A DNA stretch of 64,000 nt from Mytilus edulis (Eukaryota), in assembly GCF_963676685.1 (NCBI RefSeq), contig NC_092344.1, positions 57,474,001 through 57,538,000 of the forward strand, in the 5' to 3' direction. The translations under genes and the position numbers were made by a program. The first letter of the stretch is position 1. Each line of letters begins with the position of its first letter. The notes below the pieces were generated by a model that did not search any database, was not told the DNA's origin, and saw only the letters and a list, made by a program, of their open reading frames with translations. Shown here in pieces: positions 21,201 to 55,104 of the stretch.

Positions 21201-24200
21201 CTTTTAAAAAAAATACATTTGGTGCAAATATATATTAAAATTAAAATGAATTAAATGTATTTCATAAAAACTTATTTAAGCATCGTTTTTTAAAGAACTT
21301 TGAGTCCGGTATATTTTTTTTTTAAATTTTATTATGTTTATAAAAAATGGCATTTCCTAAAATCCTACCAAAAAAAAGTTGTTTCATAGATATGTATGTT
21401 ACTATGTTGTTGTTATCTATTGAAGAAAATGTTGCCATGGAAACACATTTTGGAACATATCTTTTCTGTATTTGCAGATTTCGGGACTGCCAAGAAAGGA
21501 TTTCAATGTTGCAAGAAAACTTTGAATTGTTTTGATGACCTACCAGATGATCTAGATGAGACAGTTTTCCACAATGGCCAACGTCATTATAATGAAGCAG
21601 AAAGACTCCATGTTTGTCAGTAAGTGTATATAAAGCTCTTCCATAAATGTCACTTTCGATTTGGACTAATATTTAGTTTTTAGAAATATTTAGTTTGCCG
21701 ATCTGACGGTCGCAAATACAGTATTACCTAACTTGCGAAGCGTAACAGATATTTGCGAATGTGTCAAATCAAAATTTACAGCGGCAACTCTATCAGAGCT
21801 CAAGGAGCTGTTATTCCAAAACTAATGCATTTCAAAAAGAAATGATACAATTGATTTTCCTGTTTGTAATTTTCTCTCATCAGTTACATGTTTATATACT
21901 GCTTTAAATCTACAATGTTGACAAGTGAATTTTGTTTCAGAGAATTGTGCTGTTTCCATCAACGCCTTTTTTGTTCTAAAATTGTCAGATATAAATAAAA
22001 TACAAAAATAAGCAGGTGTAGTATGATTACCTTTGAGACAACTCTCCATAAACTTAACTAGTGCAGTTAATTTAAATGGTAAAAAAGTGAACCATTTATT
22101 GTATGCTGATGATTTATTGTTGATATCAGAATCTGCAGATCTAAAAGAAGACATTTGTATGTATTTCCCATTTGGTCCAATGTTAAACTAAGTCCCCCAC
22201 TGGCGCCCATCTTGGATGATGGATCGGCTACAAAGTAACAACACATGGTTATCACCTCATAGGGAACATTCATACTCCATCATTGACTAGATCTAAATGA
22301 CATAGAAGTTTACAACTTCATAGTGTGGTATCCAAAATTTTGCTCTCCAGCTTATTAATACTTGTTGGAGGTTATTTCAGAAATAATTGACATCAAAATC
22401 ATATGTTTTATTTATATTTCAGCCATATTGACGAAGCTTTAATTTGTCAGGGTGATGTGTTCAGTAGAACAGTCTGTCAAGATGTCAACCCAATTATGGA
22501 AGGCAAGATCAAGCCACAGTTGGACAAAGTCAAGTTATTTTATTACAATCATTGTAACAGAGGTATGTAAATTTGATATCATTAAGGGATCGACCATTTT
22601 ACTTCAAGAAGAAATGGGGGTGTTATAGTTTTTTCCTACAACAATATTTCCCCCGTACCTTATAATGTTAAATTTTGAAATGATAGCGTAGAAAAAAAAA
22701 GTTTTCTGACTCAGACAAAAAAACATAGTTCCCACCTTTTACAGTTAAATAATTTTCCCCTTAACAAATGGAAAAATACTTTGAATGCATTTAGATAGGT
22801 AACAGTTGTAGAAAATGATGAATATTGAACATATTTTAAGATAGAACACATTCGTGAGATTAAATTCAGGAATTAAATGTAAAATGGACAAGCTATAGGA
22901 AAACAGTGTTTAAGGTTATATAACACAGTTTCAGAAGTAAATTTTTGTCTTGATAAAATGATGTCTCCCATCACGAGAAAAAACAAATAAAATCCTGTGT
23001 CAAACACTTGTCATTGTTATTAGTTGCAAGATACCATTTTAATTAGCCGATTTAAAAAAAAAATTAACTGTGTATTCCTTTGTAGGGACCGCGATAACAC
23101 CAACAGGAGGAAACCCTTCACAAAAACCACACCCACACCCACATGTCCCACCCACTGTGCCTGGAGGAACAGGAACAGGATCAGAACAGTATCACAGTCA
23201 CACAAACTCTTACGCTCCGTACATTGGAGGTGCCATCATGGGTGTGTTTGCTCTTGTTATCATCGTTCTATTTGCTATCTATTGCAGAAAGCGGGTAAAC
23301 AAAAGGTACGATTTTTTTTTCTTGATTTGCTCCCGCTTATTTTCATTTAATTCAAATGAAAATATGCCGATGTTAATTGTATTTGTAGAAATAATCCCAA
23401 AGGTTCGTCAAAGGCTACCAAAAAAAAAAGATTTACAATACATATAATTGGAAGAAACAGCATCGTCGACATAAAATGAAATAATATTTAACAAACGGGT
23501 GACCCCTTACCTCAGTGCAAGAGACTGCTGAATGTATAGATAGCAGCGAAAAGGTTTAAACTGCTTGTTTGTAATGGAATTTAAGTTATAAAGTTTATGA
23601 CATTTTAAATAATTTAAAAGGCTTTAAAAGACTTAATTTATAATGTATTTGGAGAAAAAAAATGAAACGAGTTTCATCATGGAAAACTTTACACGTACTA
23701 CATAATCTGTGGTAACCTGTTTTTTTATGCACCAGTTTCAATAGCTACGTACATGTAGAAGATGAGAGCACAAAATTTTCATACTAGTTTTATGTATTCA
23801 ATTTCAATGAACATTTTTTAATGTTTCTCTAAATGTTTACAGGAAAAGAAACAAAGAACAGAGAAATGATCCCGGACGTGAATCTACCCAGTCTTCCAGG
23901 TATAAAACTGTCAGTTATAACAGACGGAAGTCAGATGTGTATGCTGAAATTGATGAGAAAAGTGTAAGTATAGTCAAGGTGAAAAGAATACAATAACATA
24001 AAGGTGTCAGACCACCAATTAAAAATCCCTATCTGTTCAACCAAATTTTGCAATTTTCACAGCTTTCTAAATATTTTACCTTAAGTTTACTTCAAGGAAA
24101 CCAGGTATATCATGAATTGCACATGTATCACCTTTCTACATGCCAATTTTCAACCAATGTTTAAAGTCTTATAAGAAATTTTTGATCTTGAAAACACAGG

Positions 24201-25530
24201 TTCTACCAAAATAACTCCTGGTTTTCTGGAAATCTTAAATAAGTGTACAATGTAGCGAATTAATCATGAATTTTTAATGCAAACTCTCAAAATGGTCTAA
24301 ATGTATCTCCCTTTCATCAAAAGTTTCATTTCTGCACCAAAAATGAACGAAAAACAAACGACAACCACTCAATTACAGGCTCCTGACTTAGGTCAAGCAT
24401 ATACAAACATTATGTGACGGGGTTAAACATGTTAGCAGGATCCCAATCCTTCCTCTAACCTGGGACAGTGGTGTTACAGTACAGAATAAAAACGAACTAT
24501 AACATTCTGTTGAAGAATGTCAGATGGATACAAATAGAAATACATCTTACAAAAACACAGAATGTACATAGCTGGGTATTGGTATATATTCCAACAACAA
24601 AAAGACACTAAGTACTCACAGCTAGTTCAAAGCCACTAACAACTAATAAAAAAAAAAAATACAAGTTTTAAATTAGTTTATTTCCGCAATTTTCCAAGTT
24701 TATTGTTATTATATAAGATCGATGTTAAGCAGTTGCGTTAATTTTCTTCTAAAAAATCTAAATAATCACCAGTATAAATAGACGAGTTTTCCGTAATGTT
24801 TCCAACGATTTTGACATGAAAGCACTTGGAATTTACCAATTATGGTAGAGCTGACGACTATTTTGCACGGACACATATATTTTTCAAACCAGCCTGACTA
24901 TTTGGAATTTGGAGTATATATGGCTCAAAGGACTTGTGATATGTTGCTTTCTGTATTAAATATATATACGTGAATCAGAAGTTTATGTGTACTACACATT
25001 TATTCTTGGTCACGCAAAATCCCGTGATTTTTATTGCAAAACTTAATTTTTAAATTTCATATCTTTGATTATACAATGATTGTTTACAATCCTATTGAAT
25101 CTTTCAGATGATATCGTCTGTGAGTTATAATATTGATGGACATTCGTGTTCCACGGACGTCACCAATCTCTCAAATCATTCGAATACAAGCAGTTTTTCT
25201 AGGAAATATCAAAGCGCTCCTAGCATTCGACAATTAGAGCTTGATAACCATGGTTACCTTTCACCAGAGTCAATCCTACCAGCCGATGAACTGAAACCGA
25301 ATATAGAAGACGAAAACACGTCCACGCATGGGTATATCGAACTGAACTCTGAACTGGGAGATAGTGGACAGTCATATGCTAAACTTGAACCGGAACCGGA
25401 AGACGAGTACATTCAAGCAGACGAAATAGAAAGTACTCCAAACAAGAAAAAGAAACCAGACGAGCAAGGTCACATGTACTTTGTTCTTGAAAAGGAAAAT
25501 GAAGAATATGACAAAGTCATGGATCAGTGA
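16905..25530 (+). CDS. Gene B: mucin-stalk / 8-Cys-domain single-pass receptor with ITAM- and ITIM-like tail
   Basis: A mucin exon (B1 ~16905-18298 or B2 ~19362-20022) is followed by 21478-21619, 22423-22562, 23086-23305 (TM YIGGAIMGVFALVIIVLFAIYC then RKR), 23843-23963 and 25108-25530. Splice sites are canonical and phases 1/2/1/2/0 join in frame. The two Cys exons (142 and 140 nt) equal those of gene C. The 5' end is unresolved. Confidence 0.85.
19362..20022 (+). CDS. Gene B mucin exon B2 (alternative Thr/Ser/Asn-rich stalk)
   Basis: Lies in the 243-aa ORF. Ends IFRTSEAERKQRKKEIKLFCARI-G|GTGAGT, phase 1, homologous to the end of B1. Confidence 0.8.
22060..22145 (+). pseudogene. Tiny LINE reverse-transcriptase fragment in a gene B intron
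   Basis: Translates to VNHLLYADDLLLISESAD. Confidence 0.7.
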
Positions 25531-31980: not shown

Positions 31981-32734
31981 GATATATATAACATATTCTA
32001 TATAAGACGTATAGCTATATATATATATTTAGATGTTTTGGAGGAGGTGATACTTTTGCAAACTTAAAAATACAAGTACATAAATTCATAATGCAATTGT
32101 TTTAAAATATATCAAAACAAATACTATAAGAAAAATATAAAATAGAGGCATGCGAGTAAACTTTCCAATTGAAATAGACAACAACGCCCTTGAAATACGA
32201 AAATGAAACATCCGTTCTCACAGCATAGTGTGTCTTTTTAAAAGTGTAAAAATGATATTGCAATTATTCTATTAGAAAAACAATCAGAATTGAACAACGA
32301 ATTAATAAAATTTTCAATTTCATTCAGTTATAATTTTAATATTTTAAGACAAAAAAATATCTTTCCAACTAAAAACAAAAGGCAGTCATAACTTAATATA
32401 TATAGTTATAAAATCACGACTTTTTTGTCATTTTATTATCATAATACCTACATACGTGTACTTATATACAAATATTAAGTTTGACAGGCCAAATCAAGCG
32501 TGAAATAATGACAGATCTGTGACATGTAAATATACGATTGACAATTCTTATCCACAAAATATATGTACTCTAAAAAAACTTTGCCGAATATTTCATAGAG
32601 AGGACTATATAACTTTTACTTATATTTATATATACAAATACGTTAAAGATATGTAATTTTTCTTACAAAAAGTTATGTCTTTAAGGATAATGTTAAATCT
32701 AAAGAGCCTATCAACTCAGACGAGAACTAGGTAG

Positions 32735-35700
32735 TTTCAAAAAGTGGCGACCATTCCGGAAGTTCGGAACATCAACATGTCGGATCAATTAAGATTGACA
32801 ACTGTAAGTAATTCATCGATTAACGTTCGCTCGGGTACAAGCAACTCCGACATTCATGCAAATACTATTTCTAACTTATTGACATTGGTCAAGCACAGGA
32901 AAAGAAGGGAAAGAAAGAATACATTTGGAACAAATTTGGAAAAAAAATTCGGTAGTGATGGATTTTCTAGAAGACCTATCCTAAATTCTGCTGTGTCATT
33001 TGGAATTACAGATTCACATTTGACCTCGGGATCATTAGTAAATCCACCAGAATTACATAGAAAACAAATCCAAAGTGAAATGGTTGTCACAAGCGCAATG
33101 ACTTTAAATAACAGTGGACATAAAGGACTAAAAATATTAACGCCTAAAATGGTTAGAGATTACAGTGGTCAGTTTCGACCTTTTAAACCGAGAAAACCAA
33201 AAACTCCAACAACAACAACTCCAGAAATCCAAAGTTTAGCTGGATTAAATAGAACAACAGTATCTTCGACAACAGTTACTACTGCTAATAGTCCTGTTCC
33301 GGTAAGCATTGCACCAAACGAAAAAACAACTAAAGCGGGAACCAGTTTGAATCCGCATTTTACCACAGTTGGCTATAGTTCCGAAGAATCGGCTACTGTT
33401 ACTGAAATTCCGATTCAAAACAGGACTGATGAAAATGATACGCATTCTGCTCCTGAAAAGGATGAAGAACTTGTGCCAGCCACACATGGTGATAAAGATT
33501 CCTTATCACCAGACAATTCTGTACAAATTAATGAAACTTCTTTAGCTTTTGACTCCAATCTAGTAATTCCCCAGATGGATCTGATGATGTTTCCTTCTGC
33601 AAGAGCAGACGTTAGGAAAAGAAATATAGAAAGGCGACGATTTTGTGCAGGATTTAGATTGAGTAAGTTAATTTAAAACCTTATTGTATACATTAGCGGG
33701 ATAATGACTTTTTGTGCTTGACATTCAGAAGCGTCTGCTATTCCGTTATGTAAAATCAAAATTTTGAATATTGTAAAGAAAAACAATTATTCAAGTTTTT
33801 GCTTTTAATTCTCATTGTTACAAGTAAAATAAATAAAAAAAAAATTAACAAACAACAATATTTTTGTTTAACATAATTATGTTAGATATCATACTTTTTT
33901 GTAATTTTTATAATAATCACCCTCCTTCTCCTTTTTTTATATTACTATTTAATAATTTCAGAAATATGAAAATTGATCATTACTATGTTCATATAATGTA
34001 AATATTGACAATAATGATCTAACATGTGTTATGATGTCGGGGATATACAAACTGAGGCTTACAAGATTTTATTTAGAAATTAATAAAGTTTCTATGAAAT
34101 CATGATGCATTTATAATAATACAAACAAAACAAAACAAAAACAATACACCATATTTAAAGTTATATATATTTATTATTAATAACACAGATAAATTACTCT
34201 ATTTTTTTCAACTAAAAAAAAAATAAATTTCGAGCAATATTTTATACATCATTTTGAAACATTAGTTTTCATTAGTTTTATTACCCCCCTTTTTTATATA
34301 AAAGAATGAAAATAACGAAAATATTCAAGAAAGTTGAAGTCTTTATTTGTCTCGAAAGAGCTAGAATTAAGAAAGGCAAAAAAGTTTATTGGTTTCAGTT
34401 TGAAAATGAATTCTTCAACTGATGAACTTTCATTTTATTAGAATATAAGTAATTAAATTTAAATGTATCATAATAATTATTATTCAGATATTGGCAATGC
34501 AAACGTTGGCTTGCGATGCTGTATGAGGACATTAAATTGTTTTGACAATCTTCCACAATATCTGGATGAAACATTGTTCCACCGAGGAAGACACCATTTC
34601 AGTCCTGCTGATAGACGCCATATTTGCCAGTAAGATATTTAAGGATATTAAATTTTTGTTCATTTTAAATTTTTCATGTGTTTTTATCTTTTTTTAAAGA
34701 AAAAGTATGCACATCCACAACAGTATGAACAGTCAGCACTTTTGTACCTTGTACCTCAGTTATGAATTTTGTCTCTCCCTCTGTCATTCTGAATATGCAT
34801 GAAATATTTGCCACTGGACGTCAAGCAAACGACAATCAATCATTTGTCTCTTGATTTACAACTATTATTATGTTTACTACAATACAACATGTACATGTAG
34901 CACTGGTATTATATATATTAGTCTCTACTGGGACTATAACCTATATGATTTTTCAATTATACATAGACCCGGAACAAAGCATGGAAATGCTGATGGTTTA
35001 TCCCGTTGCCCCCAAGAACAGTGATTATGCTCTGAAAATGACACTTTAGAAAGTTTAAAGTGTGGACCCTGTAATAAATGCATTAAGAGATCCCGATAAA
35101 TGGAGAGTACTCTCATAGAAAATAACCCCAAATTTTTGTCCCTATTAGGGCAGTTATACCCGAAGTGAAACTGCTGACTTGGAAAAGAAGTATTGGACAA
35201 AATGGAAAGAGAAATATAGCTCTAGTAAACTGACCCAGTATCAAGAAGATGATGCAGATATATGCCCTATTCTTGATGGCTTAAGAAAAATGAAAAGCCA
35301 ACTGATTTGACCCTTAGTAGTCCAACAACCCTGTTTTTTGTTACTGTACAATAGTATTAGTGAATATTATACAGATTTATATTTTTACATGTACTTATTT
35401 TCATATATATTATTTTTAATTCACATTTTAAGAGAAATAATGTTTATATATGTTTTAACTTTTTAAAATTTTTTCATATAATTTTTTTCTAATTTTAGAG
35501 ATATAGACGATTCCATGCATTGTTTAGAAAGAGTATTGGATAGAGATAACTGTAAACCAGTTACTTCTTTAATGAACAGGAAAATGTCGTCACAGATGGG
35601 AAAAGTCAAACAGTTTTATCAGAATATTTGTCCTAATGGTATATATAGTTATTTTGTATTCAATTTCAGAAAATGAGGTATATTTTAACCTCCTTGGTTT

Positions 35701-38201
35701 CAGGAAACATATAAGGGGAAGTAACAACTAATAAGATTACGGAAATAATAATTAGCTCGATACATTTATGTCCCTTTTATTGGTAATTCAGCACTATATC
35801 GATAAAAACTAACAGTTCAATTGTTATACTATAAAAATACAAAATGTATACTGCATGAATACAAGAAAGGTCAAATACAGACAATACAGAAAAAACCTCG
35901 AGAATATAACATAATGTTAAATTAAACACTCTCGAGATGGAAAACAGCGGTAAACGTGCATTTTCTCTTTAAAATAAATAGTATTCTTTATTTAAGTTCT
36001 TGGTTTCAAAATGTGTATACATAGAGCTGCCTGAGAATTGCTAAACGCTAAACGTCCTGTTTTACATGAAATGTACCATGTATTTGATGTTAAAAATAAA
36101 AATAAATGGTTGATACAGGAACACAAGTAATAAGTAACTGAATAAATGATCAACAATTTGCTAAGGAACCGGTTACACTGACAAACAACTACAGTAGGTG
36201 AATAACAACCATACGGTAGATGGATTCTTATCTATATGGCCTCCCAACAGAAGAGACAGCACGCGCTCTCCCAAAATGGGATATCTGATTTAAAGTCGCT
36301 ATTTTGACGGGACGAGTTTCGGCTTTGATATATCATACATGGATAAGAATAAAAAAACAACAAAACACCATCTGATTGAAGAGACAAGAAAATATTTTTT
36401 TACAATAACTTAACTTCAGACATGATGATTTGATATTTGTGCATCCTGCATATTTTCAACTAGATGTAGAAATTAATGTCATTCAACATGGATTTCAAGC
36501 ATATAAGTTTGGTTTTTCAGATCCACATATTTCCACTGTCCCTCAAAATGGAAAACCTACTACACCAACAAACCATAACAATCTTAAAAGCAAAGGATTC
36601 GGACCAATCCCGGGATCACTATTACCGTTTGTAGGAGGTACCATAGCTGGGTTGATTCTATTATCTATAATCCTGCTAATTGTGATATATTGTAGAAAAC
36701 AATGCAAAATCAAGTAGGTATACCATTTATTTTTATATATAGCATTTAATATAGATTCCTGTTTTAGGTATAAGAGTAAGAGAAATGGTGAAATATATAC
36801 GTCAAACATTAGTTTTATCCCCACACATTCCACTATTTTCTATATTATTTATATCTTGGACAATCCTGTAAAAGCGCACGGAGAAGAAATTGAACTACTT
36901 CAGTATCAACTATTCTAACCATACAGACGTATGATGAATGAAAACATTATCCCGGTTTTCCCCACCTGAAGCCACTTGTATAAAATTCTGAAACTTATAC
37001 GTATCATATATATCGTTTTATAAATTTTTCTAATTAATGCAAAACTTTTTGGTCCATTTGTCTAGAAGTTTTTCACAGACACGTATCTTCAACCAATATT
37101 ATAATCATGCGTTAAATTCATATTTTGTTGTTGCAGAAAACGTAATTCTGAAAGTCAAGAATCAAGTTTCGAATCCGACCAATCATTGAGGTATAAATCA
37201 GTTTCCCACAATCGACGGAGGTCTAGTGCTTATGAAGAAATAGACGTTCATAAAGTAAGTTTATGGCTAATAAAATAGAATACACGAACAAACTCAGAGG
37301 AAAAATTGTTTTTTCTTTTTATGCCCCACTAAGGGGCATTATATAGTTATTCGGGTTATAAACCGCTGCAGGTTAAAGTTTTTGAAACTTAGTACATACA
37401 TGTATGTTCCCTTTATTTTTTGACACCAATTTCACTGTCCACTGAACATAAAAAAAAATGATAGTACGGGTGGGGCATCCTTGTATTATGGACGCATTTT
37501 TGTTTGTTTGTTACCGGTATGTCAATCATTTGTTTAACAACACCAAAATGTGGTTATGATACAATACTAGTGTATTTGGAATGTAGTTAGCCTATTTGCC
37601 TTTTCTTAATTTTGCTTTGGCGCTGTCTGTTTGTTATTCCACTTATGGTTTTTGAATGCAGCATTCGTATTTCCTTCTTTGTATTTGTAGTATTCATATA
37701 TAACATGTAGCAAGAGGTTTAGAGCGGTAGCATGTAACAAGGGATTCAAGCTGTATAAATGAATAAGTTGTATCATTTATGTATAATTTAATTATCTATT
37801 GTCGCCAGTTTTATACTCAGCCTTTGTTTATTTTCTAGATGGTCCCTTCAATAAATTCACCAAACAAAAAGAAGAATCATGGTATTGACGAATCACGCAT
37901 ATCAAGGAAACTACCTAGTGCTCCAAGTGAGGAGGGATTTAAAACAGGAAATCATTACTATTTATCTCCAACTTCGAGTTTACCCGAGGATAACCGAATA
38001 AACGATAGTGATAAAGGCGTTTCAAATTTCGGGTATTTAGATCTACAAACGGACGAGAACGGTCAGTCATATGCCAAATTAAAGACAGAAGAGGGAGAAT
38101 ATATTACACCAGAAGAAATAGAAAGTACACCAAAACAAAAAGAGAAAAATCCAAAAGAAGAATATCATATGTATTTTGTATTAGAAAAGGAGGATGAATA
38201 A
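32735..38201 (+). CDS. Gene C: paralog of gene B (mucin stalk, 8-Cys domain, TM, ITAM/ITIM tail)
   Basis: Exons ~32735-33662 (...FPSARADVRKRNIERRRFCAGFRL), 34488-34629, 35499-35638, 36521-36713 (TM FVGGTIAGLILLSIILLIVIYC then RK), 37137-37254 and 37839-38201. Phases are the same as B. Shared motifs include CC..TLNCFD.LP..LDET.FH.G, GQSYAKL, EIESTP and HMYFVLEKE. The 5' end is unresolved. Confidence 0.85.
34945..35330 (+). pseudogene. Ty3/Gypsy pol fragment (RNase H C-terminus and linker) in a gene C intron
   Basis: YDFSIIHRPGTKHGNADGLSRCP...CGPCNKC...QYQEDDADICPI, with internal stops. Confidence 0.8.
37316..37505 (+). mobile_element. Internally deleted HINE-like copy
   Basis: Shares TTTTATGCC, CAGGTTAA, TGAAACTTAGTACA, TCCACT.AACATA and GGGGCATCC with 3963-4253. 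Confidence 0.6.
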
Positions 38202-39796
38202 GGTTGTGAAGTGATGGAATAAATCGAATCCAATAACTTACACATTTATGGAATATTTATTTATGTATAAATAGATTGCATTTGTAAATTATTCTACATA
38301 TTTTTGTCATAATTAAAATCATGTTTTTGAATGATTTGAATTACATTTTTATTTCACTTTAAATGTTTACATAAAAAATGGGATTTGTGGATGAGTTAAT
38401 CTGTGCCCTATAGGACCTTCTCATCATCATAATCTTGAACTACATGTATATGATGACGTTGGCGTCAACACCCTCAACAATATGCATAAATCTCCCCATC
38501 CAGTTTCTTAAAAAGCTAGTGAATTTTCAAAGCAGTTCCTGTTTCATTAATGGCATCCGTCTTGTTGCTCAATTTAGATCAAAATACCCTTGTACGTGAA
38601 ACATAATTGAAACGTTTGTAAATGGTTTTTGAAAAGATTCCCATTATGGATTAAACATAAAAAAAAAACGCTGACAGAATTAAGCTCAGTGGTTTTAAAA
38701 TTTCATTATGTTGAGAAAATTTAAAGTTCGTGTTTGACCATAAAAAATGCCAAACTCACGTAATATTCAAACAGTATATATTTTGGATCAGTCTCATTAC
38801 ATTCCAATGAAAACTGAGTTTTTCATTGATAAACCAAATGTTGAAGTGGCAGAGTTTATACTTGTAAGGATTTTGAAATAGGTTTAGATCAAAATACAAA
38901 ATGAAACTTAAAAAAAAAACAACCAAAAAAACCCTTTTAATTATATATTTCATGCGGCTGAAGCATTTTTCGTTATTTACTCCCGGTTCAGGAAAGCTCA
39001 ATGATTACCTGTTACACAAAGAGGTAGAAGAACCGACAAAATTGCAGATTTACAGGACCAAATTTAAACTAAAAATAATAGCCAAATCCATGTATATACT
39101 ATTTTGTTTCATTTCCTCATCAACATTCAGTTCTGTAGGTAATTTAAAAATATGATGAACCTATATTTCTTAAACAGAGTACTGTCTGGAATCAAACGGA
39201 GCCTTCTGATAAAAAAATAGGACGTGGGCGGCGATGAAAGCTTTTTAATTGACATATCGTACGAACTTCCTAGTTTCCATGTGTTCTGACGTAGGAGAAT
39301 TAGCGTTGACCATCTTCCGCATAATATATTGAAATGACTAAGACCACGTTCTTATTAAAGTGGATAAATCCTAATGTTTATTCTGATAAAAATACCCTGT
39401 ACAAAATGACTGTTTGTGTATTACGAGAAAACAAAATAAAATCTGTGATCAAAGTTCTGTTATTTTTTTATCAGAAACAAATATTATCAATTATAATATA
39501 TGTCTTCGGTTTTATGGCGAAAAAGATGAGCAAAATTCTGGAGTTCGCATAAATTTGACTTATATTATTAGATTTTAGAATAGGAAAGTTAAACGTAGAT
39601 CAAAGTTTTTTCTTAATGATTTTGTGTTATTTCAGTTATTGGCTTTTGCTTTTGATTTTGTAACTACAAGTTTTAATACATTTATGTTTTTTTTTTGGGG
39701 TCGCAATGATAATGAATTTTGAGTGAAAACAAAAATATACCATAAATTAGCAATTTATTTCAAACTCAAATTGAGTATAACTATTACTATTAGTAA

Positions 39797-42700
39797 TTAG
39801 CAGGATGAAAGTGAAATCCCATAGTTGGTCTGCACATATTGGCCAATGTTTGTTGTGCTGAGGATTGTTTTACTGCAGTCAAAACCAGCGTATTGTAATC
39901 GGGTCTCTGAACATAGGGCAAACTGTCTCGCCATCATGCACTTGTCATTTTTGGGATCTTTCATATTCTCGAGGTATGGTCTGCAGTAAGGCTCACGTGC
40001 CATGACTTGTAGTACCCCAGCTTCATCCTGACAGAAGTCGGCGGTCGTTTTCTGCATTTGACCTATAAAAATATACAAACAACGTTAAATAGTAGAGATG
40101 ATCAAAAAGGCGGAATAGTAAAAAAACATTTTAATACCAAGGAAATATAATAAAACAAATATCCTAAAGAATAGGCAATTTGGCTGCTTTTATTCAATAG
40201 AATACGCGTAATATTTGTACAGATCTGTAGTACAAGACACACGTGCAAATATATACAATTGAACACTAAAGGCCACATGCATGCGCACTTTGTTGGTGTA
40301 TTTTTGCTTTTGAATACGTCTCAGATTCAGATAAAGGTTTTTCCCGTATGTAAATGTCTTTAGATTTGCGCAATCGATACTAATATATGATGGTATGCAA
40401 TCGAGTAGACATATATTTTTGCTGAACAATTAGCATTCGTCATATTTATGTATCGTAAATTCACGCAACCTTTAATAAATTGTATCCCAGATATAAGGGA
40501 CTTCTTTGAATGTGTAATTCGATTTGCAGCAGTTAAACAAAAAAAAAAAACATAACAATTTGAATTTAAAAAAAAACAATTGTTCATTACCATACGATTG
40601 ATAGTAGATATAAAAAGGGGGAAAACTCTCATCAAATGTATACGTACCCTTTCGACTAAGATTTATGCGTTACGACATGTCGTAACTAACAATTTTGTGA
40701 AAACATTTTGTCGTTATCTTATATGATTTCTGATAATAAGAGATAACAAACCAAAATCAAAGTTTTGAACTTGAACTTGACCGTTGATACTTGGAAAGTA
40801 TTCGGCTAAGCAGGGTCAGTTTCAAAAGCGTATAAACTGTTCGATATCATATTCCAAATATCTAAGTAACATCTTGCGAAACAAAAACAAAAACAACGAA
40901 GGAAAAAAATCAGGCGGATGCCTGAACAAATAATCAGAAGAAAACCAATAGGTCTTTCCACGGAAAAGTGGAAAGACCTAATAAACCGTCGTTGTGTTAT
41001 TTGTGAATTACAATACTTCATGTATATCACGACAAAGACAGTTAAAAGCAGAGCTATATTTTTTTGTATTTGCCTAATGTTTAGTGAAAATAACCTAGAA
41101 AGTCTCAATGTTACTAACCTTGACATTCCGACAGCGTGGACGGTTTAACTCCTTGGTAACCCAGAATCTTAGAAAATTCCGGCTGCAGTTCTGGCACAGT
41201 GCACGTATGACCAGCTTTGCTCATTTCGTGCTGAAGCATGTGCATTGCGTAGTAAAAATTTCTGAAATACAGATCTAAACTATTTCACATTAACCTTATA
41301 ACAGTGATATTATTTGTTCTTCACCCCAAAGGATACACAATTTTCCTCTTTTTTAAACATTTTAACTTTTAACAATAAAAAAAATGGCGATTGCATATTA
41401 TATATAGAATGAAATTCAAAACAGTGTGGCTGTGGCCATTGATTGACACATTAAATTCATCCATTGACTGGGACAATTTACGTGAACGTTTGTCTGTAAC
41501 GACCACTGTTCACGACGTACCTACGATAGACATTTAAACTGTGGGGTCACCAAAGGTTTCTTAACGCCTTTAATTATAAAATAATTCGAAAAAATAATCA
41601 GGAATAACCTTTATGTTTTGATTTATATAATTGATATAAATCAAAACATCGTGTTATTTCTGATTAATTTTTTCGAATTACTTTATTGAGGTGTTGAGAA
41701 CCTTTGGTGACCCAATAGTTTAAGTGTCTTTAAAAAGTACATAGTGAGCAGTGGTCGCTACATGCAAACGTTCACGTAAATTGTCCCAGTCAATGGATGA
41801 ATTTAATGTGTCAATCAATGGCCACAGCCACACTGTTTTGAATTTCATTCTATATTACATACCATTCTTTTACCCGAAGCTGTAACACGACAAATGAGGT
41901 AATATTTTAATTATTTTGTTCATCAATACTGGTTTTTAAAGTTCTAAAATACATCCTATAATGTTCTTTTAAAACTTGGTTTCAGTTTTACGCATAAGGT
42001 CAATAATTCTGTTTCTAAAGGCCCATATATAATGTTTTATAATGTTCTAAAAAACATTGTCGTCGTTTAACGCATGAAACAAATTGTTCATCAATACCTG
42101 TTTCTAAAGTCCCATATATGTTCTATAATGTTCTAAAAAAACATTGTCGTCGTTTAACGCATGAAACAAATTGTTCATATACCTGTTTCTAAAGTTTCAA
42201 AATGCACTCTTTAATGTTTCAAGATATCAAGATTTATTGATAACGCTCAGACACATTAATGTGTAACATGAGGTCAAAGTATAATACATAAACAATTGAA
42301 TGACGAAATGAGCATGCAGTACTATCTAAACATATAGAAATACAATAATTATTGTAGATATTTTAGAATAAACAAGCAATTTTCTTAATAAAAAATGACA
42401 ATCGTTTGAAGACTTCCATATTACATATGGACAATAATCCTTCCAATTTAATATATTGAGGATTAATAGTATAATATTTAGGTAAGTATTTGTTTCTATA
42501 ATTAACAATAGAATCATGTTGACATACAAATAAAACATGAAATTCATCACCAATAAATTTATGACATAAGGTACATATTCTCTCTGGTCTAGGTATATTT
42601 TGCCAACGGCCTGTCTCGATTGGAATACGTAGGTTCGATGTCCTTAATTTAGTTATCCACCCTCTATTCTGTTCAGATAGTCTGATCAGATATTTTTCTA

Positions 42701-45700
42701 GTCCAAAGTCCTTTTTGAATGTCCCATAAAATTGTCCCCGGGATGAATTTTCTATATCGCCAAACCATGAGGTAATAAACTGATCACTCAATATACGATC
42801 AAGATAATTTTTATCACAAAAGCCCATTTGGTTTATGAAAATATATCCTAGACCAGTGTTGTTAAATATTGATTCGACAGAATCAATCCATTTAAAAACA
42901 TAATGGCCATGATTCTTCAATGATAACATCAGCCTGTACAAAGAACTACTTAGTTTACTGCTAATGTTTACAACTTTACACCAATACGAAATCATTCTAC
43001 ATTTAACTCGAATTTGCAGAGGAAATCTTCCCAATTCTCCATACACCATGAAATTGGGTGTAGTATTTCGAACTTTTAATATTCTTTTGCAAAATTTCAA
43101 ATGCATCTGTTCAATAAATTTCAAATTCTCAAAACCCCAAACTTCAGAACCATATAAAAGAATGGGTTCTATCATGGAATCAAATAATTTCAGTTGCAAA
43201 TCTATAGAAATGTTTTTAACAATTCTATGTATAAAATGCATCGATTTATGTGCTTGATCAATAAGTTTCTTTTTGGTATCTAAAAAAGTACCGTTATATT
43301 TAAAGATAACACCTAAATAAGAAAATTTTTCAACAATCTCAAGTTCTTTGTCTTGTAATAAAAATTTAAATTTCTTTTTACTTTTTCTCTTTCTAAAAAT
43401 CATCACCTTTGTTTTATTTAAATTGACTTCTAATTTCCACTTTTCACAATATGATTGAAAAATATTTAATGATCTCTGCATACCTTCTTCTGTTTCAGAT
43501 AAAATTACAGTATCATCTGCATATAATCTATAATACTAAAATTACGAGGTCCAATTTGTCAGCCGTCATCACGTAAAAACGACGTATCAAAGAATTCAAC
43601 TTTATATATAACTTATATAGTACAAAGGTGTAGATTAAAAATTACACCACTCCAGGCCCTTTTGTTTTCCACGTAATTAATATTGCCAATAATTAAGAAG
43701 TTCCGGGTTGAGTCCGATACCGATACCAATAGTATATTCACCTGTTACCTATTACCTTATTTGTACGTTCCGCATCTGACAGGCGCACCACCAAACGGTG
43801 TATTCAGGATTAATATGCTATATACACAGGTCATATACACAGGGTTGACACTACTAGATTGTCACATTGTTACCTATTGTAGCATTTTAATCAGTAAAAC
43901 TTTCTAAGATAACAATACGAATACTAAAAATCTGGACTAAAATAAGGCAGTCCAGTTTTCAATTTTGTTAGCGGGCATGACGTAAAACAGCGAATCAAAG
44001 AATTCAACTTAGTTTATAACTAATATAGGACAATGCTGTTGATTAAAAAATATTCCATTCCAGGACCTTTTGTTTTCCAACTAATTAATACTACCAATAA
44101 TTGACAAGTTCCAGTTCGACGGATTCAAACAGAAAGATTTGAAAGCAGAGAAAACTGCGTATCTTATAATCGGCATGACTTTATCAGATGACAATACTAA
44201 TATTAAAATAAGGCTTGCGCATAGTTATATACTTTAATTCAGTCACGGACCCGCGATATCACGGGTGTGTTCTAGTATAACAAATAATTCAGAAAATATG
44301 TGCAATTCACTTTGAAACTTCTCTTTAACAGTTTCTAGTGGAATCCCATCTAGATTCTTAAAGTAGTCTTCTAAGTCATTAAGAAAAATTGAAAACAAAA
44401 ATGGCGATAAATTCTCCCCCTGTCTTACACCTGCGAAACAGGGAAAAAAATCTGACTGACATCCATTATATTTTACACATGATTTGATTCCTTGGTACAT
44501 ATTAAAAATAACTTTAAAGCACTTCCCTTTAATATTACTCAATTGAAGTTTTTCCCATAAACCAGATCTTGATACAGTATCGAATGCTTTCCGAAAGTCT
44601 ACAAAAGTACAAAAAAGTTTTTTTCGAAATGAGAAATACAGCTCTATGAGTGCATGAAGCACAAAAATATTGTCTACAGTTGAATACCCCTTTCTAAAAC
44701 CCGCCTGATTTTCATGTATAAGTGAAATTTCATTTGCAAAAAAATTCAATCGAGTATTGATTATGGAAGTGAATAATTTCCCTATACAACTAATTAATGT
44801 TATAGCTCTATAGTTATCTGGATCCTTTGGACAACCCTTATTTTTAAAAACTGGTATAATTATTCCTGCTGTCCAAGTTTCAGGAATTATACCTGTATCC
44901 AATATCACATTAAATAGTTTAGTGTAAATACAAATAAAAAATGGTGGAGAGTTTTTCAAAAACTCATTCAGTATCTTGTCAGTACCAGATGCTTTACCAT
45001 GTTTCAAGTTCTTAACGGCATCCACAACCTCTTGTTCTGTAATGACTCCATTTAAAATTTCATTATAAATGGGGTCACTACACAACGCATTGATGTCGAT
45101 GCCGTCAAGATCTTCTTCGTCATTTGCATTCATGTTTTTAAAATATTCATGAAATGCTTCAATACTGATAGAGGGGTTGTCTTTTTTGTAGCCAGAATAT
45201 TTTTTAAGTGTCTTCCAAAATCTCTTAGAGTCATTTTTTGAGAGTGCCCTCAGTTCATCCGAACATTTTTCTTTATACTGCTGATAGTTAATGTTAAGTG
45301 TCTTGCGGTATTCCTTGGCCTTGCTATTCATTGCCAGTTTATTACCACCTGATTTCGCTCTGCTATATAAGTTTCTAGCCTTGTGAAACTCATTACGTTT
45401 GTCTTGGCAATTTTTATCAAACCATGGTTTATTTTTGCGGTCGGGATAAACCGGTCTTTTTTTAGTCTTGCCTAGAACTCCTTCTGCCGTATCTAACAGT
45501 ACATTGCCAAGGTCATCAACTAGACCGTTTATCTTTTCAGGCGTAAAATCATTTGTGTCAATACTACTCAAAACGTGATCAATCTGTTGTAAATTACCTG
45601 AGACACTGGATAACGCTTGAAAATATTCGTCTGCTTTTCTACAGTCCCATTTAATGTGAGTTTCTGTGTTACCTGTATTTTTTTCTGTGTTTACCTTATC

Positions 45701-48700
45701 AGTGTAATTACTATCAGTATTGAAAGACAATGTAAAACATATTATACTGTTATGGACATCTGAAAACATGGGATTAAACTCATCTACTCTAAATTCAGAG
45801 ATATAATCAAACATGTGAGGAGATACAATTAAATAATCTACTACGCTGGAGTCTACATGTAGTATGACCTATAAATTTGTCTGAGAAAATACGACCATTA
45901 CATATAAAAATTCCACATCTTTTACATAGTTCTAAAAGAAGAGTACCATATTTATTCACTCTACCTTGATCATAACTGTATCTTTGTAGAGGAACATTTT
46001 TACTTTCTAACAACAGATAAGATCAAAGTACTGAAGTACTGAACATCAGATGACCGCAGGTTCTTGTGGATGGTCAAAAGCACATGTCGCAGAAACAGAT
46101 CACATCTCTATACCTGAAACTTGGGTTAATTTACAGAGATATTTTTTTTCTGATACAAGTTCGTGCTTGGATGATGAATAAATGACAGGAAATTCAACCT
46201 CACCGTAATAACTATTATATTGTAGTGCAAGAAATCAGTATACCTTGGACTATTATACTTATATAATAATAGTCGTAGAGAATACACTGGTTTGTTGTTA
46301 TATATATTATTAATATTACGATTGCATGTATATCTAATTTTCATCTATTTGTATATGATAATTCTATTCTATTATTATTATAGTGCAGTGCAAGTGCATG
46401 GTGGACACTCTTCTGTAAAAAAATCAAAGCCTTAAAGGCTGTAAAAGCAATTGCTGCCATGTTAATGTTTTGGGGACTTAATTTTCATCTACATATATAA
46501 GAATTAAACCTGACAGGACATAGTTGTCTAGTGAAAAGCAAGAAGGTTTTGACTTTATATCAATCAAAGACTTAAGCAGGAAATCATTTTTAATATGTTT
46601 TATATTTCACAAGGAGGCAACAAGTTTACCAGGCTAAAGTTGGGGGTAATTATGGATTATCCCCTGGTAGTGTTTGTAACTGGGCAATAATTACTTTTCT
46701 TTATTTAATTTTAACAATTTTCATAATTAATTTAAATTAACCATTCAGTTAAAACATTTCACCTTTCGAGACGCTAATGTTGAAAAATGGGACAGAAATA
46801 AAATAACTTACAAGACATAAACATGTAAAAAATAAATATATATTTCAGCTTACTAAAAATATTTTTATAGTGTTACTTTGACATCATTTCTTAAAACTAA
46901 GTCCCACACATAATTGTTCATTTGATATGTGTCATCCTCATGCGATACGAGAAGTTTTCATGTCGCTAAATTGTCTTCTTGTCGCTTAATTTATTCTTCT
47001 TGTCCGTTCTTGACGCTTCTTGTCGCTAAAATTCTTCTTGTCGTTATTAGTGAGACCGCTATTTTTAGATTACAGGTGGTCATTTACACTACACGTATAA
47101 CCTGTGTAGTGATTTTTATTTCACGATAAATTTATGAATGAACGATATTTTATGAATGAACAAGAGCACCTGACCTCTTTCTGAAACACCAATTAAACAT
47201 ATAAAATCGTATTTATTAAGATATAATTCAGTCAAATTTTCACCACTATAAAATCAACAACTGAAATGATTCCATATAATTTTGTTGAAACATCGTACAA
47301 CCGGAGAACAGAAATCGCAGGTATGAAAATGCACTTTTTTCACTGGTGTTGAAAACCCAAAACTAATTTGACTATTATTTATGAATGACGGAAATTTAAG
47401 CGATAACAATACATCGGAGTGACCTCAAGGTCATCCTCTGTAAAAAAATATATTTATTTATAACATCGTCTTCTACCTGTAAAATTTCTAGTAAATTTTC
47501 ATCAGGTATAACATGATCACTATCAATAGAGGTTCTAGAATTAAAATCACCAATCAGTGCTACTTCTTTTGAAGTATTTGAAAATCGAATAAGTTCATCT
47601 TCAATCTCTGAAAAAGATTCATCAGATGAATATCTGGAGAATTCTGGAGGTATATAAACACACCCAAGTAAGATATCTTTACCCGTATCAAAATTTCCGT
47701 GTAAAATTTCTACCCACTGAACGAACTCAGATTCTGAGTTAATAAATTTAAGAATATGTGACAGTTTCTTTTTATAAATGATAATAATACCTCCTGATTT
47801 CTTTTTAAATTTTTGTCTATTCTTAGTAAATAGAGTATAATCTGTTGGTAATTTAATTTCGTCATAATCATCAGTTTTTGTTTCTACAAACACCAGAATA
47901 TCATGTTTTTTAATAAAATTATCAAAGCAGGGTTCAACAATTTTGATTTTAAACCACAAACATTAAGGTAAGTGATATTGAGTTTATTTACATTGTTATT
48001 TAGCGTTCTACGACTGTCTGATGCGTTATCCTAACGGTGTCCCGTCTGATTACTGTGTATTGGGTTGCGAGGCTCTTCACGGGCTGGTTCAAACGGTTGA
48101 CCGTCTACAAAAATCTGATCATACACTAATGATGCCCGGATATTACGCCTATGGAGTTCCTTTAGCTTTGGTAACAGTTTTTGACGACGGTTGCTGATCT
48201 CAGTGGGATATTGCTGGTTAACTGTAAATTTTGGTTTTAGTTTAAGTTTCTGCGGAACGACTTTTTTCACTCTTTCATGGTCTTTATAGTGAGTAAATCG
48301 AGCAATAATATTACGCGGTTTTCCGTCCCGTCGTGGTCGTAATCTATGGACGTTTTGGAAATCTATTTCATCCGCTTCAGGAATATCAAGTTCTGTTTTA
48401 ATAAAGTTCTTGAGTACAGTTTCAGTATTTTCCTCCTCATCAGTTTGTACAATACCGCCGAATATAAGGTTGTATTTCATCGAGTGACTTTGTAGTTTTA
48501 AATACTCCTCTTTCAGTTGATTTTTTTCTGTATCAATTTCTCGGGTGTAATTTTCTACCAAATTCATTCTGTCGGCAATTTCAAAATGGTGCTTTTCTTC
48601 ATTTTCCAAAATTTGTGCATGTTCATTTTGAGTTTTCTTTACAGAGTCGATTTCTTGGTGTAAGTTTGAAATTTTCGTATCAATGTTGTTGAATCTTTCA

Positions 48701-51700
48701 TCAAGTTTTTTGTCCAGTTTAAAGAGTTTATCACCCACTTCAAAGTCTATTCGTTCTAATCTTTGGTTCATTATGTTAATTGTTGAAAACAACATTTCCA
48801 TGGTTATGTTCTAAACAAACTTGCTCGCAGTTTGACACAAGGTATATTTTCATCCATAATATATAAACTCATCATAGATACCAGTACTAAATTTTGTATA
48901 TACGCCAGACGCGCGTTTCGTCTACAAAAGACTCATCAGTGACGCTCGAATCCAAAAAAAAAAAAAAAAGAAAAAAAAAAAGGCCAAATAAAGTACGAAG
49001 TTGAAGAGCATTGAGGACCAAAATTCCTAAAAGTTTTGCCAAATCCAGCTAAGGTAATCTATGCCTGAGGTAGAAAAATTCTAAATTTTGTAAACAGTTA
49101 ATTAATAAATATAACCATATCAATGATAATTCATGTCAGCACAAAAAGTGCTGACTACTGGGCTGGTGATACCCTCGGGGAAATAAATCTCCGCCAGCAA
49201 TATACCTATTTCTAAACTTTCAAAATATATATTCTATATTGTCTTCAGAAGAACTAGACGTACCATGCATAAGGTTATGCCATTAAGTTATGAAAAAATG
49301 ACAGTGATTAGCTGAATCAAAGTGAGAAGGGTTGCTGACATCAACTTTGATTCGTTTTTGGCTGATTTTTGTACAATTGGCAATCATACCACATCTCTGT
49401 TATGTGTATATATTCTTTTGTCGTCCAATAAGTTTAGAGGGTTGTTCCATTCTGACTGATACAAAAAATCTGTACACATAAACAACTTATACCAATAATC
49501 TGTGAAAAAAACAAAACTTGTACAAACAATCTGTTCAAAAAACAATATCTACATATTATCTGTACAAAATAACAACTAGTCCAAAAATCTATCCAAAATA
49601 ACAACTTGTACGGAAATTCTGTACATAACAACATGCACAAAAAGTATGTTCAAAATAACAAGTTGTACATATAAATTATTGTTAACAAACATACTTGCAG
49701 TATACAGCTTGGCTCACGACCGTAATATTGTTAAGATACATAATTCCCATTGCGTCTTGTGTATGTTTTGAGATGTATATAAAATCTTTACACTCTGAAT
49801 CGCCGCCAGGTTGACCCGGTTGGTACACTTTGAAACATTCATCCAAGTTGACTTTCGGGTAGTTATCCTGGATCCACTGTTTTGCTGTCGAAGACTGGAG
49901 ACCATCTTTAATTTTACCATCTTCACAGTGGCTTTCGCCCAACATGTTTGTGAATTGATCTGTGCATACTTCTAAACTGGAAACTAATCTGAAATTTCCC
50001 AACAATTTTTATTATGTATAAACGTTCTAAAAAGGTCCGAAAATACTAGATAATACATTTGACCACCCAAACCATCCGACTTATTTGGAAAAGAACCAGG
50101 CGTATTCTCAAAACAAAGTTTCTTTGCTAACAAAGTCTTACTAACTAAGATATAAAAGCTGCATGTATGTCCTGACGGATAAATTGTTTTGAGTGGAGGC
50201 ATCACAAAAATGTATTCCGTTGACTGTCTGATAATAATAATAATCATCGTAATAATAATATACACGCAGAGAAAGAATAAACTTACGAACAAATATAATA
50301 GTTGGAATGTGTAAGGGATCCTCCAATGATAGGAGGAAAACAACCAATGGCAGATATCAGCCCAAGACGATCAGGAGATGTACACAACGATTCAGTAACT
50401 TCTTCTACTGTAAAACAAGATCATATAATATAAGTGTTATATTTGGTGGGGTTTGTGTTTCTCTGTCTTTAGTTTTCTATGTTGTGTTTTGTGTACTATT
50501 GTTTGCAATTGTCTGTTTGTCCTTTTCACTTTACCAATGGCGTTGTCAGTTTATTTTCGACTTTTGAGTTTGATTGTTCATTTTGTATCTTTCGCATCTC
50601 TTGTTGTCATTGGATAATGAAATTCACCGATAATTACATTTTGCTAAAGCAAAATTGGTCAGCAAAACAAGATATAAAAAAAGCCAAATTAGTGCAATCG
50701 TCAACCAACTCGTTACATATGTTGGTATACCCCCTAATCGCCTACTAGTTTAAGTGCTTTTGGTTTTTCCCTATTTTTTTAATACCATAAATGTCTATGT
50801 TTAGATAGAAAATTAGCTGAACCAAAATGAGTCTCGATGTTGGTTCACACCGCTCTTTTATTCTTACTGCATTGCAATAATTCATTTTTATGCAAAATTA
50901 CAATAAGTGGCACAGACTCCTTAGGTCTTATATTTTTTTTTTATTAACGATAGTAAAAGATTTGATAATATGCTTACATTGACACGATTGCGTGTCCAGT
51001 GCAGTCAACCAATCATCGGTATAATATGTCGCCAACTTGGTAAATGTGGTATGAAGACTCTGCATGTCACAGGTTTCGCCATTTTTAACAGCAAGTAATT
51101 GAATACATCTACCTACTTCATTGTATATCCTGATGAAATAAAAATACATTATCACGAGTCTTCCACTTTACCGAACAGTTTTTTGTTTGTTCCTTTTGTC
51201 TAATAATGGATGTATATGAATGTTATATAAACCATGCCAGTGCTGACATCCTGACTACATTAAAATAAGAAGATGGGGTAAAGGGCTGAAATAAATACAA
51301 AACAAATACATCTAACAAAAATACAGAGTGGACGAGGCACAGTACTTATACATCCCTACAACAAAAAGACACGAAGTGCAAATCTGAGAGTACTCGTAGT
51401 TACTGTATATCTTACAAGTATGCAGTATGCCTCTCTTCCAAAGATCTCATCTTAATTTATCTCAGTGTTTCCATCTATAAAGTTAATATGCAGCGTGTGC
51501 ATGACTTTAAAAGAACAGCCGCAAATCTTTCTCAAGTTGATTTTGTTTGGAATTGTTCCTACGTTAAACAGTTAGTTTGAATCAAATTATACATTTTAAG
51601 TGCACAAAAATGAATAACAAACAACATATGGTCTAAATTGTATAAATCAGTCATAAAATGGAGTGAATTAACACATATCCACGTGCGAACGCACACTCAC

Positions 51701-54700
51701 TTTTTGCATACATTTACATGTTACGGTATCTTTTCCAGTTGTCGTGTAAGTAAACAATACATATTTTTCTAATTGAACATTACACTTACTGACAAACATC
51801 CGTATGTGTGTGTACGGTATTATTCAGTACAGCAAGAATACCAATACAGTTGGTTGAATATTTGGAAACTTTACTTATGTGCGAGCATGCGTCGACTGTA
51901 AAATATAAGACACCATGTTATCATGGTACATGTTCTTGCTTTATTGGTAAGTGTGATGTCAAAAGCTATTATACTCAGTCTGACTGTACATGTTTCATAT
52001 AAGATTTGAAAACATGATTAATAACATTACAAATCCAATAAGCTCAGTGTTACTGATCTAAATCAAATACATGTATGTCTTAACTGAATGTCAAGCCAGA
52101 CCCGCGTTTCCCCTACACAAAACTCATCAGTTGTCAGGTCATTAAAGTAGCTGGAATGCAAGATACGAACTGAAGTTGAAATACGTTAAAAAAATAATTT
52201 TATGCCAATAGATATACAAGAAGATGTGATATGGGTGTCAATGAGACAACTTTCCACCCAATCAAAAACACGGATTTATTGCTAAGGGGTAAAATCTTCG
52301 TGTTTTCAATAATTCAACATGTTTAAATTGAGACTGAATTAAGCAACAGTTGAAAATGTATACAAAGACGTATTGAAGCATTTGCAATGCAGTCCAATTT
52401 AATGTTTATAATATTGAATGCGTTTTTGTAGTTATATTGACAGAAACACATTTTGTATGACGATAGTCTTCGTGTGCAAACGGTGATTACAACTAGTTAC
52501 CTCATATATTGATACCGATATAACTTTCTGTTCAGAAAAAAATATGTAAATTAAAACAAAATGATAGCATCGTGCCTTGATAAGTTTAATGTTTAATGAT
52601 ATCATAAAATAAGAACTTTTTAAATTGGGATGTAAAGGTAAAACATTACGAAAGAGTCGATGGCAAAGATACTTACTAGCAGTTACTTCTTTCTGGAAAA
52701 ATGCAAAAAGTGATCAGTCTAACATATACATGTAGCAGTAAATGTATACGATCAAATCTTATATTTCTGATAAAAGGATGCAACTATGTTGTTATTACAT
52801 GTATTTCCATTCTAGCCTCGATTGAAAGACGGTCGTGAGTTCAACCCTTGCTGGGTCAAACCAATAACTGTAAACCAATAACTGTAAACCAACTACTACG
52901 ATATGACATCATTTGTAACGAAGCAAACATTTTCTAAAACCCTTTAGTGTTCATATTATAAGACCAACTCGTTTATGTTAAACTCTTTAGTCAGCGACTC
53001 GCTCAGAAATGCATTGGTTTTCTCCGGGCACCTCAGTTGCCTCCGCCAATAAAAACGGTTTATTCTCGATTGTCCCACTTATAAATATTTTAGAGTTCTG
53101 ATTGTCCCACATGAAAAGTTCTGATTGTCCCACATGAAAAGTTCTGATTGTCCCACATTATTTCATGAAGTGAAATGTTCTTAGATAAACCAGGTTACTA
53201 TTGTTTGTTTTACTAAATAAACAAGAATTTATTATTGCACATTTAATATTGATTTTAAAAAGTATAAAAAAATGGTTTTTTAACTCATTAGATTAATACA
53301 CTTTTTATTTTAAAAATATAAATTTCTGATTTATGAAATATGTCTACAATTTTACGTTATTTGTAAAAAACTTTTTTATATACTGTATTTTTAATTACAT
53401 TTTCTCTATGAAGTTGTTAAATAAATTTAGAAATTATAAAAAAAAATGAGAATGGAAATGGGGAATGTGTCAAAGAGACAACAACCCGACCAAAGAGCAG
53501 AAAACAGCCGAAGATTACCAATGGGTTTTCAATTCAGCGAGAAACTTCCGCAGCCGAAAGTGTGTTTCAGCTGACCGCTAAACAAAAATGTGTACTAGTT
53601 CAGTGATAATGGACGTCATACTAATCTCCGGAGTATTCACAAGAAACTAAAAATAAACAAAATAACAAAATCACTAACAAAGGCCAGAGGTTCCTGACTT
53701 GGAACAGGTGCAACAATGCGGTGGGGTTAAACATGTTTTTTGAGATCTCAACCCTCCTTCTATACCTCCAATATAGAAAAAACAAACACACAACAATGCG
53801 CACAGTAAAACTCAGGTAAGAATTGTCCGAGTCCGATGGCCGAATAGGTAACAAAAGAAACTAAACAAAATGACAATGATGCATAATTTAACAAAGGACT
53901 ACTTGCAGTTACTGACATGACAGCTCCAGACCTAAATTGAACTGATTAAAAGATTATGTCTTCATCATATGAATATCAAGTAAAATCCCTCCCGTAAGGG
54001 GTTTAGTATAAATACCATCATACAATACATGAGAAGAACATAATAGTTATCAAAGGTACCAGGATTATAATTTAGTACGCCAGACGCGCGTTTCGTCTAC
54101 ATATCATGCCATTAACAGGTTGTAGAATACATGTGTTTATTTCCGATGCAAAGACCATATAAGTGAATCAATATTAAAGCCAAACTATGCAAACTTTAAT
54201 GACCTGCCAACAGTATCGTAAAAACTATCTATATCCTTTCTTAATGAGTCTGTTTAAATGTTTTATAAGCTTTTGAAGTGAATGCCGACGTTTTTGTTCT
54301 TTGTAAAGAATATTTACCATAAAAATTGGATGTGAAGTACCTGAACGTACAAGATGTCAGCATGTTGAATTATATTTACGAATGATGTCCTTGTACCGAT
54401 GATAAAATTTAGTAAATGTTTTGACTAGTTTGTGATATCGAAAACCCTGGTGTAATAATTTTTCAGTAATACAATTTAGAATAAACTCATTTAAATTTCC
54501 ACTCTACACGAACTTGTTGATAATGATATTTTTTTCACAAGTCTTTGCAATTTTACTGGGAAAGTTAGAGGATAGTAATACATCATTCTTTGCATTATCA
54601 ACGTCAGTTTCACATGAACCCAAGAACTCCCTTATATGATAACGAGGCCGCTGTTTAGAATTCTGCCAGATCAGCCTTTCTAAAAATCAATATTAAAAGA

Positions 54701-55104
54701 TTGTTTTTCCAATATTCCCAGTGTTTTTGCCATAAAGTGCAATCAACAGGACTCGTCACCAACCAGTTTTCCATAAAAAAAAAAGAAGATGTGGTATGAT
54801 TGTCAATTAGACAACTCTTAAGACTAGTAGACTAAAAGACACGAAAATTAACAACTATAGGTCACCTTACGGTCTTCAACGATGAGCAAAGCCATAAACC
54901 CCATAAGCCAACTTTAAAAGCCCCACTATGAAAAATGTTAAACAATTTAATTTGAACTAGAAAAACGAACGACCTGATTTTTGTACAAAATAATGAAGAA
55001 AACACAAATGTGTTACACAACAAAAGACGACAACCACTGACTGAATACTCACGTCATCATTACAATTTACAGAATTATATGACTTTTCAAACTTTCTTTT
55101 ACTT

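Follow-up and report, generated by a model that had tools for sequence, protein, structure and literature searches.

A cysteine-rich helical domain of tandem mussel receptor-like genes and the modules of a neighbouring secreted protein share exon architecture and may share an origin

A receptor head and a secreted array in adjacent genes often mark a receptor/decoy or receptor/ligand pair of innate immunity, and mussels are noted for the unusual diversity of their immune genes. In RAMP proteins, one transmembrane helix follows directly after the ectodomain and is itself followed by a tail of ~9 residues (PMC9832379). Here, we analysed a 64,000-nucleotide stretch of Mytilus DNA (G000:C1:57474001-57538000; hereafter the window, to which positions refer unless otherwise given), which is AT-rich (~32% G+C) and carries open reading frames (ORFs) of long interspersed nuclear element (LINE) type. 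It contains two tandem single-pass receptor-like mucin genes, named B and C, and gene D, which lies tail to tail with gene C at a distance of 1.6 kb and encodes a protein with a signal-like N-terminus and four cysteine (Cys) modules. The ectodomain of B and C and the modules of D were found to share intron positions, intron phases and a part of their Cys spacing, and their common origin from an ancestral exon pair flanked by phase-1 introns is the reading that we favour by a small degree.

The ectodomain of both receptor genes is encoded by two exons, a and b, which are equal in length between B and C (142 and 140 nt). In gene B, exon a (21478..21619, plus strand), located with the database proteins P0002 and P0006, carries CC-x5-C-x28-C, is entered in phase 1 and ends as TGT CA|gtaagt in phase 2, and exon b (22423..22562, plus strand) continues with x8-C-x9-C-x25-C and two codons to a phase-1 end. 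The corresponding exons of gene C, also on the plus strand, are at 34488..34629, ending as TGC CA|gtaaga in phase 2, and at 35499..35638, with a phase-1 end two codons past the last Cys. Exons a and b lack the first Cys of the 8-Cys pattern, which is carried by upstream exons that end at 18298, 20022 and 20421 in B and at 33662 in C; this Cys sits 4–7 codons before their phase-1 donors, giving x13 or x15. The full pattern C-x13/15-CC-x5-C-x28-C-x8-C-x9-C-x25-C, as proposed in the initial annotation, was thus seen in the exons, and as a regular expression it matched seven database proteins from several Mytilus species. The splicing derived from the window agrees with RefSeq and other database proteins, and P0006 (M. 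galloprovincialis) is nearly identical to gene B.

Gene D is on the minus strand and consists of 8 exons with 384 codons; its product has no membrane span, and the stop codon comes directly after the last Cys of the fourth module. The first module is split between D1a (51790..51895; C-x12-C-x17-C), which ends as TGT CA| in phase 2, and D1b (50978..51129; x8-C-x11-C-x28-C and one codon), which has a phase-1 donor. The second begins in D2a (50287..50407; C-x13-C-x16-C), ending as TGT TC| in phase 2, and continues in D2b, which is fused to D3a in a single exon (49695..49988) that has no intron between the modules and ends as TGC AA| in phase 2. The third is completed by D3b (41119..41261; x21-C-x25-C and one codon), which has no Cys at the C4 position and ends in a phase-1 donor, whereas D4 (39797..40062) is a complete module in a single exon without an internal intron (C-x15-C-x14-C-x8-C-x11-C-x24-C, stop). 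Three of the splice joints (49988|50287, 50407|50978 and 51128|51789) were each exact in RNA contigs from three runs, and a fourth was supported by an RNA loose end at 49695 that reads the first bases of D3b. A second loose end, at 51895, reads a 16-nt micro-exon (52677..52692; phase 0 in, phase 1 out) and exon 1 (56680..56772), both of which were located in the window. The coding part of exon 1 runs from the ATG at 56736 to 56680, followed by the donor gtaagg, and its 19 codons have a hydrophobic signal-like core; the 5′ limit of this exon is a minimum set by the extent of the RNA contig. Gene D is therefore expressed.

The D modules had been described as 6-Cys domains, which holds for D1, D2 and D4 with spacings of 12/17/8/11/28, 13/16/8/12/29 and 15/14/8/11/24, respectively. 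D3 departs from this description as it has only four Cys (x30, x21 and x25). Because x30 equals 13+1+16 and x21 equals 8+1+12, D3 has lost exactly C2 and C4, and this joint loss argues for a C2-C4 bond in the other D modules. C1 and C3 are 30 residues apart in every one of the four modules.

When the gene structures of the two domains were compared, B, C, D1, D2 and D3 were all found to have a phase-2 intron in the codon that directly follows the opening Cys of C-x8-C, which for D1–D3 is the codon after C3. This had been claimed from the genomic sequence and is borne out for B and C by the database proteins and for D by the RNA, exactly for the three joints of the D1 and D2 exons and through the loose end for the D3a/D3b joint. 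Similarly, the splice sites confirm a phase-1 intron 1–2 codons past the last Cys in B and C (two codons) and in D1 and D3 (one codon). The last Cys closes each of the two domains, and the borders of both are in phase 1. Among the Cys spacings, C-x8-C is the only one identical between B/C and D, and two others are similar (9 versus 11-12 and 25 versus 24-29). By rough reasoning, and not by a formal test, the combined match in gene structure would arise by chance well under once in a thousand.

The competing explanation is that the two domains are unrelated or convergent, being small helical bundles of the secreted pathway that share C-x8-C, with the intron match a coincidence; we consider this a serious contender of somewhat lower probability than common origin. 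The half-pattern x7-C-x9-12-C-x24-29-C is not rare in random frames: six-frame translation of the window gave 10 occurrences (0.4 in shuffles), and since five of these were true exons and five were spurious, the Cys spacing alone is weak evidence. Phase-1 borders are moreover the commonest class for extracellular modules. Chance does not readily explain the exact position and phase of the internal intron, as a phase-2 intron in the same codon would be expected about 1 in a few hundred times once the register is fixed; coincidence would further have to account for the two similar spacings, for the end of both domains right after the last Cys and for the adjacency of the genes in a lineage-restricted locus.

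Several results weigh against the common origin and in favour of coincidence. The comparison of profiles for B/C and D, which was proposed with the initial annotation as a check of homology, gave no similarity, and none is seen between the residues themselves. With Cys-anchored alignments of the second halves, hhalign returned a probability of 0.06%, and with the full domains a probability of 0.11% (E 0.5), with the best local match out of register. The Cys frameworks of the first halves also differ, being CC-x5-C-x28 in B/C and C-x12-15-C-x14-17 in D. The D repeats are only 17–26% identical among themselves in their second halves and have a few conserved positions other than Cys; it is thus no surprise that the sequence signal is lost between D and B/C.

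The folds of the two domains were predicted with AlphaFold from shallow alignments, which is a further caution. For B/C, the fold was taken from database proteins, using P0008 (B-type) and an 8-sequence alignment of such proteins. For D, where D1–D3 were analysed exon by exon, D4 was modelled with two sequences, D4 and its paralogue D4′; a MAFFT alignment with half-module rows misaligned the halves and was not used. In the P0008 model, residues 20-118 had a predicted local distance difference test score (pLDDT) of ~61-89 per 10-residue block, with ~80 through most of the core, and helices at 29-41, 48-55, 64-85 and 94-115. The D4 model had a pLDDT of 81.8 and a predicted template modelling score of 0.75, with helices at 6-22, 27-32, 40-57 and 69-80. 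The two models are alike in that C-x8-C lies on the long third helix (C71 and C80 in P0008; C41 and C50 in D4), the next Cys is in a loop (C90; C62) and the final Cys comes after the last helix (C116; C87). The best structural neighbours differ, being elongated three-helix bundles (BAG, MIT and Habc) for B and compact helical domains for D4, and this speaks for the two domains being unrelated. These predicted structures are compatible with a common origin and are not decisive.

The models nevertheless bear on which cysteines would correspond. The secure equivalence is that of C3-C6 in D with C5-C8 in B/C, comprising the long helix with C-x8-C, the loop Cys, the last helix and the terminal Cys. 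An equivalence of the first Cys of the two domains, as the initial annotation would have it, conflicts with the exon boundaries around the phase-1 intron, since C1 is upstream of this intron in B/C and downstream of it in D. The helix starts are at similar offsets when counted from the first Cys past the phase-1 intron (C35 in B and C10 in D4), which suggests that the exon pair was the mobile unit and that C1 of D matches C2/C3 of B/C. We therefore find it likelier that the Cys ~10 residues past the phase-1 intron are equivalent, and in that case the C1 that the alternative upstream exons each bring to B/C would be an addition. The proposal of one ancestral helical disulfide module thus stands as far as the helical and Cys-rich predictions, the equivalent second halves and the shared introns are concerned, and finds no support in profile similarity or in the first halves.

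The possibility that both domains are very divergent members of a described family, either the RAMP extracellular three-helix domain or DUF19, was also considered and appears very improbable. The RAMP1 ectodomain (PDB 3n7r/3n7s) was the only extracellular disulfide-bonded domain matched by both models over their full length, and the match of D4 to 3n7s_D in Foldseek was weak (template modelling score 0.45/0.46). The cysteines of RAMP1 pair as 1-5, 2-4 and 3-6, and a C2-C4 bond is what D3 implies for D. Up-down three-helix bundles have few topologies, so a weak match to RAMP1 shared by both models comes cheaply and fits unrelated domains just as well. The RAMP Pfam profile (PF04901) did not match the exon pieces or the full-length B/C proteins, and its best hit in the scan of the 1.37-Gb assembly that contains the window had an E of 2.95, with no hit in the window. 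We take the structural match to RAMP1 as a lead and no more. A DUF19-like resemblance had been suggested on the basis of spacing, and the likeness to DUF19 (PF01579) is that of a small Cys-rich domain of secreted type. This candidate was rejected: hmmscan at E up to 10 listed it for none of the exon pieces, the complete D4 or the full-length B/C proteins, and the only above-threshold match of the 157-position model in the own genome was on another chromosome and not on these exons. Pfam searches with all the exon pieces and the full-length B/C proteins returned only weak noise of transmembrane type.

The distribution of both domains was narrow. When 1.84 billion representatives were searched exhaustively with HMMER, a profile of exon a from B and C found four clusters, and every one with a named source was from Mytilus. 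The B and C exons matched only each other in their own genome, and a profile of eight second halves of D modules matched only D and its paralogue D′ there. D4 gave no match in a word-index search among proteins of 47-149 residues and nothing at E 10 in a sequence search of solved structures. The proteins that match the window exons are uncharacterized proteins of Mytilus trossulus, M. galloprovincialis, M. coruscus and M. californianus, and literature searches found no paper on genes B, C or D. Both families are apparently very small and lineage restricted, and the B/C domain and the D module belong to no described family and have no Pfam domain and no solved relative.

A single other genomic copy of D4 was found 191 kb away, and it belongs to the paralogue D′. 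All six module exons of D are present in D′ (L007) with 87–97% nucleotide identity, the splice sites are kept and the indels are in frame only. D′ is compact and lacks the LINE-type retroelement ORFs (reverse transcriptase, endonuclease and others; 42366..48801, minus strand) that lie inside the D3a-D3b intron of D. Most of the single intron that was compared is ~66% identical between D and D′. The synonymous divergence (dS) was 0.20 and the nonsynonymous divergence (dN) 0.034, giving a dN/dS of 0.17, which indicates that both D and D′ are under purifying selection. The duplicated block corresponds to 36199-51959 of the window, with copies at L009:2165-4636 and L007:48-5946 (G000:C1:57696165-57709946). 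This segmental duplication contains the transmembrane, middle and tail exons of C, without its ectodomain exons, together with all the module exons of D. A copy of D exon 1 is at G000:C1:57748180, which is 38 kb upstream of the D1a′ exon.

The first intron of D contains stretches of ~50-65 nt (53300-53500, 53900-54100 and 54700-54900) with a depth in the thousands in the RNA-type contig sets and many loose ends. These look like pieces of abundant repeats or a source of small RNA, and a search for tRNA genes at these high-depth spots found none.

The remaining exons of B and C were located on the plus strand around the ectodomain exons. Upstream of exon a, gene B has two alternative mucin exons, at 16918..18298 (located by tblastn of P0005 and its donor context; own C1 four codons before the donor, phase-1 end) and at 19365..20022 (tblastn of P0006; own C1, phase-1 donor), and a third alternative upstream exon of the isoform X3 type at 20349..20421 (tblastn of P0008; own C1 with x15 to CC, phase-1 donor). 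Gene C has a mucin exon at 32777..33662 (tblastn of P0001), in which C1 is five codons before the phase-1 donor. Downstream of exon b, the stalk and transmembrane exons are at 23085..23306 in B (tblastn and ORF) and 36520..36720 in C (tblastn), both with approximate ends, and the cytoplasmic tail exons, supported by ORF and tblastn, are at 25108..25530 in B, with the Tyr motifs YIEL-x10-YAKL, and at 37839..38201 in C, with YLDL-x8-YAKL. After the Cys domain, both proteins thus have a stalk of ~45 residues rich in Pro, Gly and His, one membrane span, a basic cluster and a tail of ~180-200 residues with YxxL-x8/10-YxxL. The Tyr spacing of the tails resembles that of an immunoreceptor tyrosine-based activation motif (ITAM), the C-terminal HMYFVLEKE is conserved, and the middle exon has YAEI (B) or YEEI (C). 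From the Cys content, the mucin region and the positive-inside rule taken together, the B/C domain would lie outside the cell.

The C1-bearing upstream exons (18250-18298, 19975-20022 and 33610-33662, plus strand) all end in a conserved and very basic stretch before the Cys, of the kind R-A-D-K/V-R-R/K-R...R-R-R-F-C, which may form a first helix of the domain or serve as a dibasic site for processing. The annotated B/C proteins P0001, P0002, P0003 and P0005 have no signal peptide, and each starts at a Met within the mucin exon. All the models may lack a 5′ exon; the alternative is that the proteins sit N-out in the membrane and have no cleaved signal. P0004, a database ORF fragment of 69 aa, ends exactly at the Cys closing exon a, and its ~60% identity to C is evidence of a further, more divergent gene of the B/C type.

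A third receptor gene, A (5609-8914, plus strand), has a transmembrane exon at 6450-6653 and a tail exon at 8108-8914, whose repeated Y-x-x-L-x-K-E/D motifs are like those of B and C. P0009 (420 aa), the protein annotated for gene A, shows no more than a short stub with three Cys ahead of the membrane span and is probably 5′-incomplete; when examined, it provided no bridge between B/C and D. Relatives of the gene A tail were found outside Mytilus, and one of them, P0016, is named as being from Tegillarca granosa.

In the reading that we favour, the membrane-proximal ectodomain of B/C is a predicted disulfide-locked helical bundle of ~95 residues whose two exons form a symmetric pair (phase 1 in, phase 2 inside and phase 1 out), and D and D′ are predicted secreted proteins of four tandem helical modules of ~85 residues, three of them with three disulfides and D3 with two. 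The ancestral exon pair would have been duplicated locally and would then have diverged beyond recognition by sequence. If this homology holds, two adjacent genes would use one lineage-restricted extracellular module in two ways, as the head of a receptor and as a tandem array that is secreted, and this module would constitute a new domain family; if the homology fails, B/C and D are two ordinary orphan Cys-rich genes that are neighbours by chance. As for function, we infer an extracellular binding module on ITAM-type receptors and in their secreted four-module neighbour. An extension of this idea, which we regard as unlikely, is a recognition system specific to mussels, based on an undescribed three-helix fold locked by disulfides. 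One module would be displayed by each of the receptors A, B and C, which is seen for B and C, and D would be secreted as a multivalent four-module ligand, opsonin or decoy whose targets are the receptors themselves or the partners that they bind. Receptor and secreted protein would be undergoing joint duplication, as in the copy of D with the C transmembrane and tail exons 191 kb away.

When compared with the known systems, the B/C proteins are unlike RAMPs in the length of both the stalk and the tail, and D is unlike them in having no membrane anchor. Another parallel is with exon-shuffled phase-1 modules of receptors and their soluble paralogues. The difference from these is that the link between B/C and D comes from gene structure and predicted architecture and not from sequence, and the likeness is in the arrangement itself, where a symmetric unit would be used once beside a membrane anchor and four times in a secreted neighbour.

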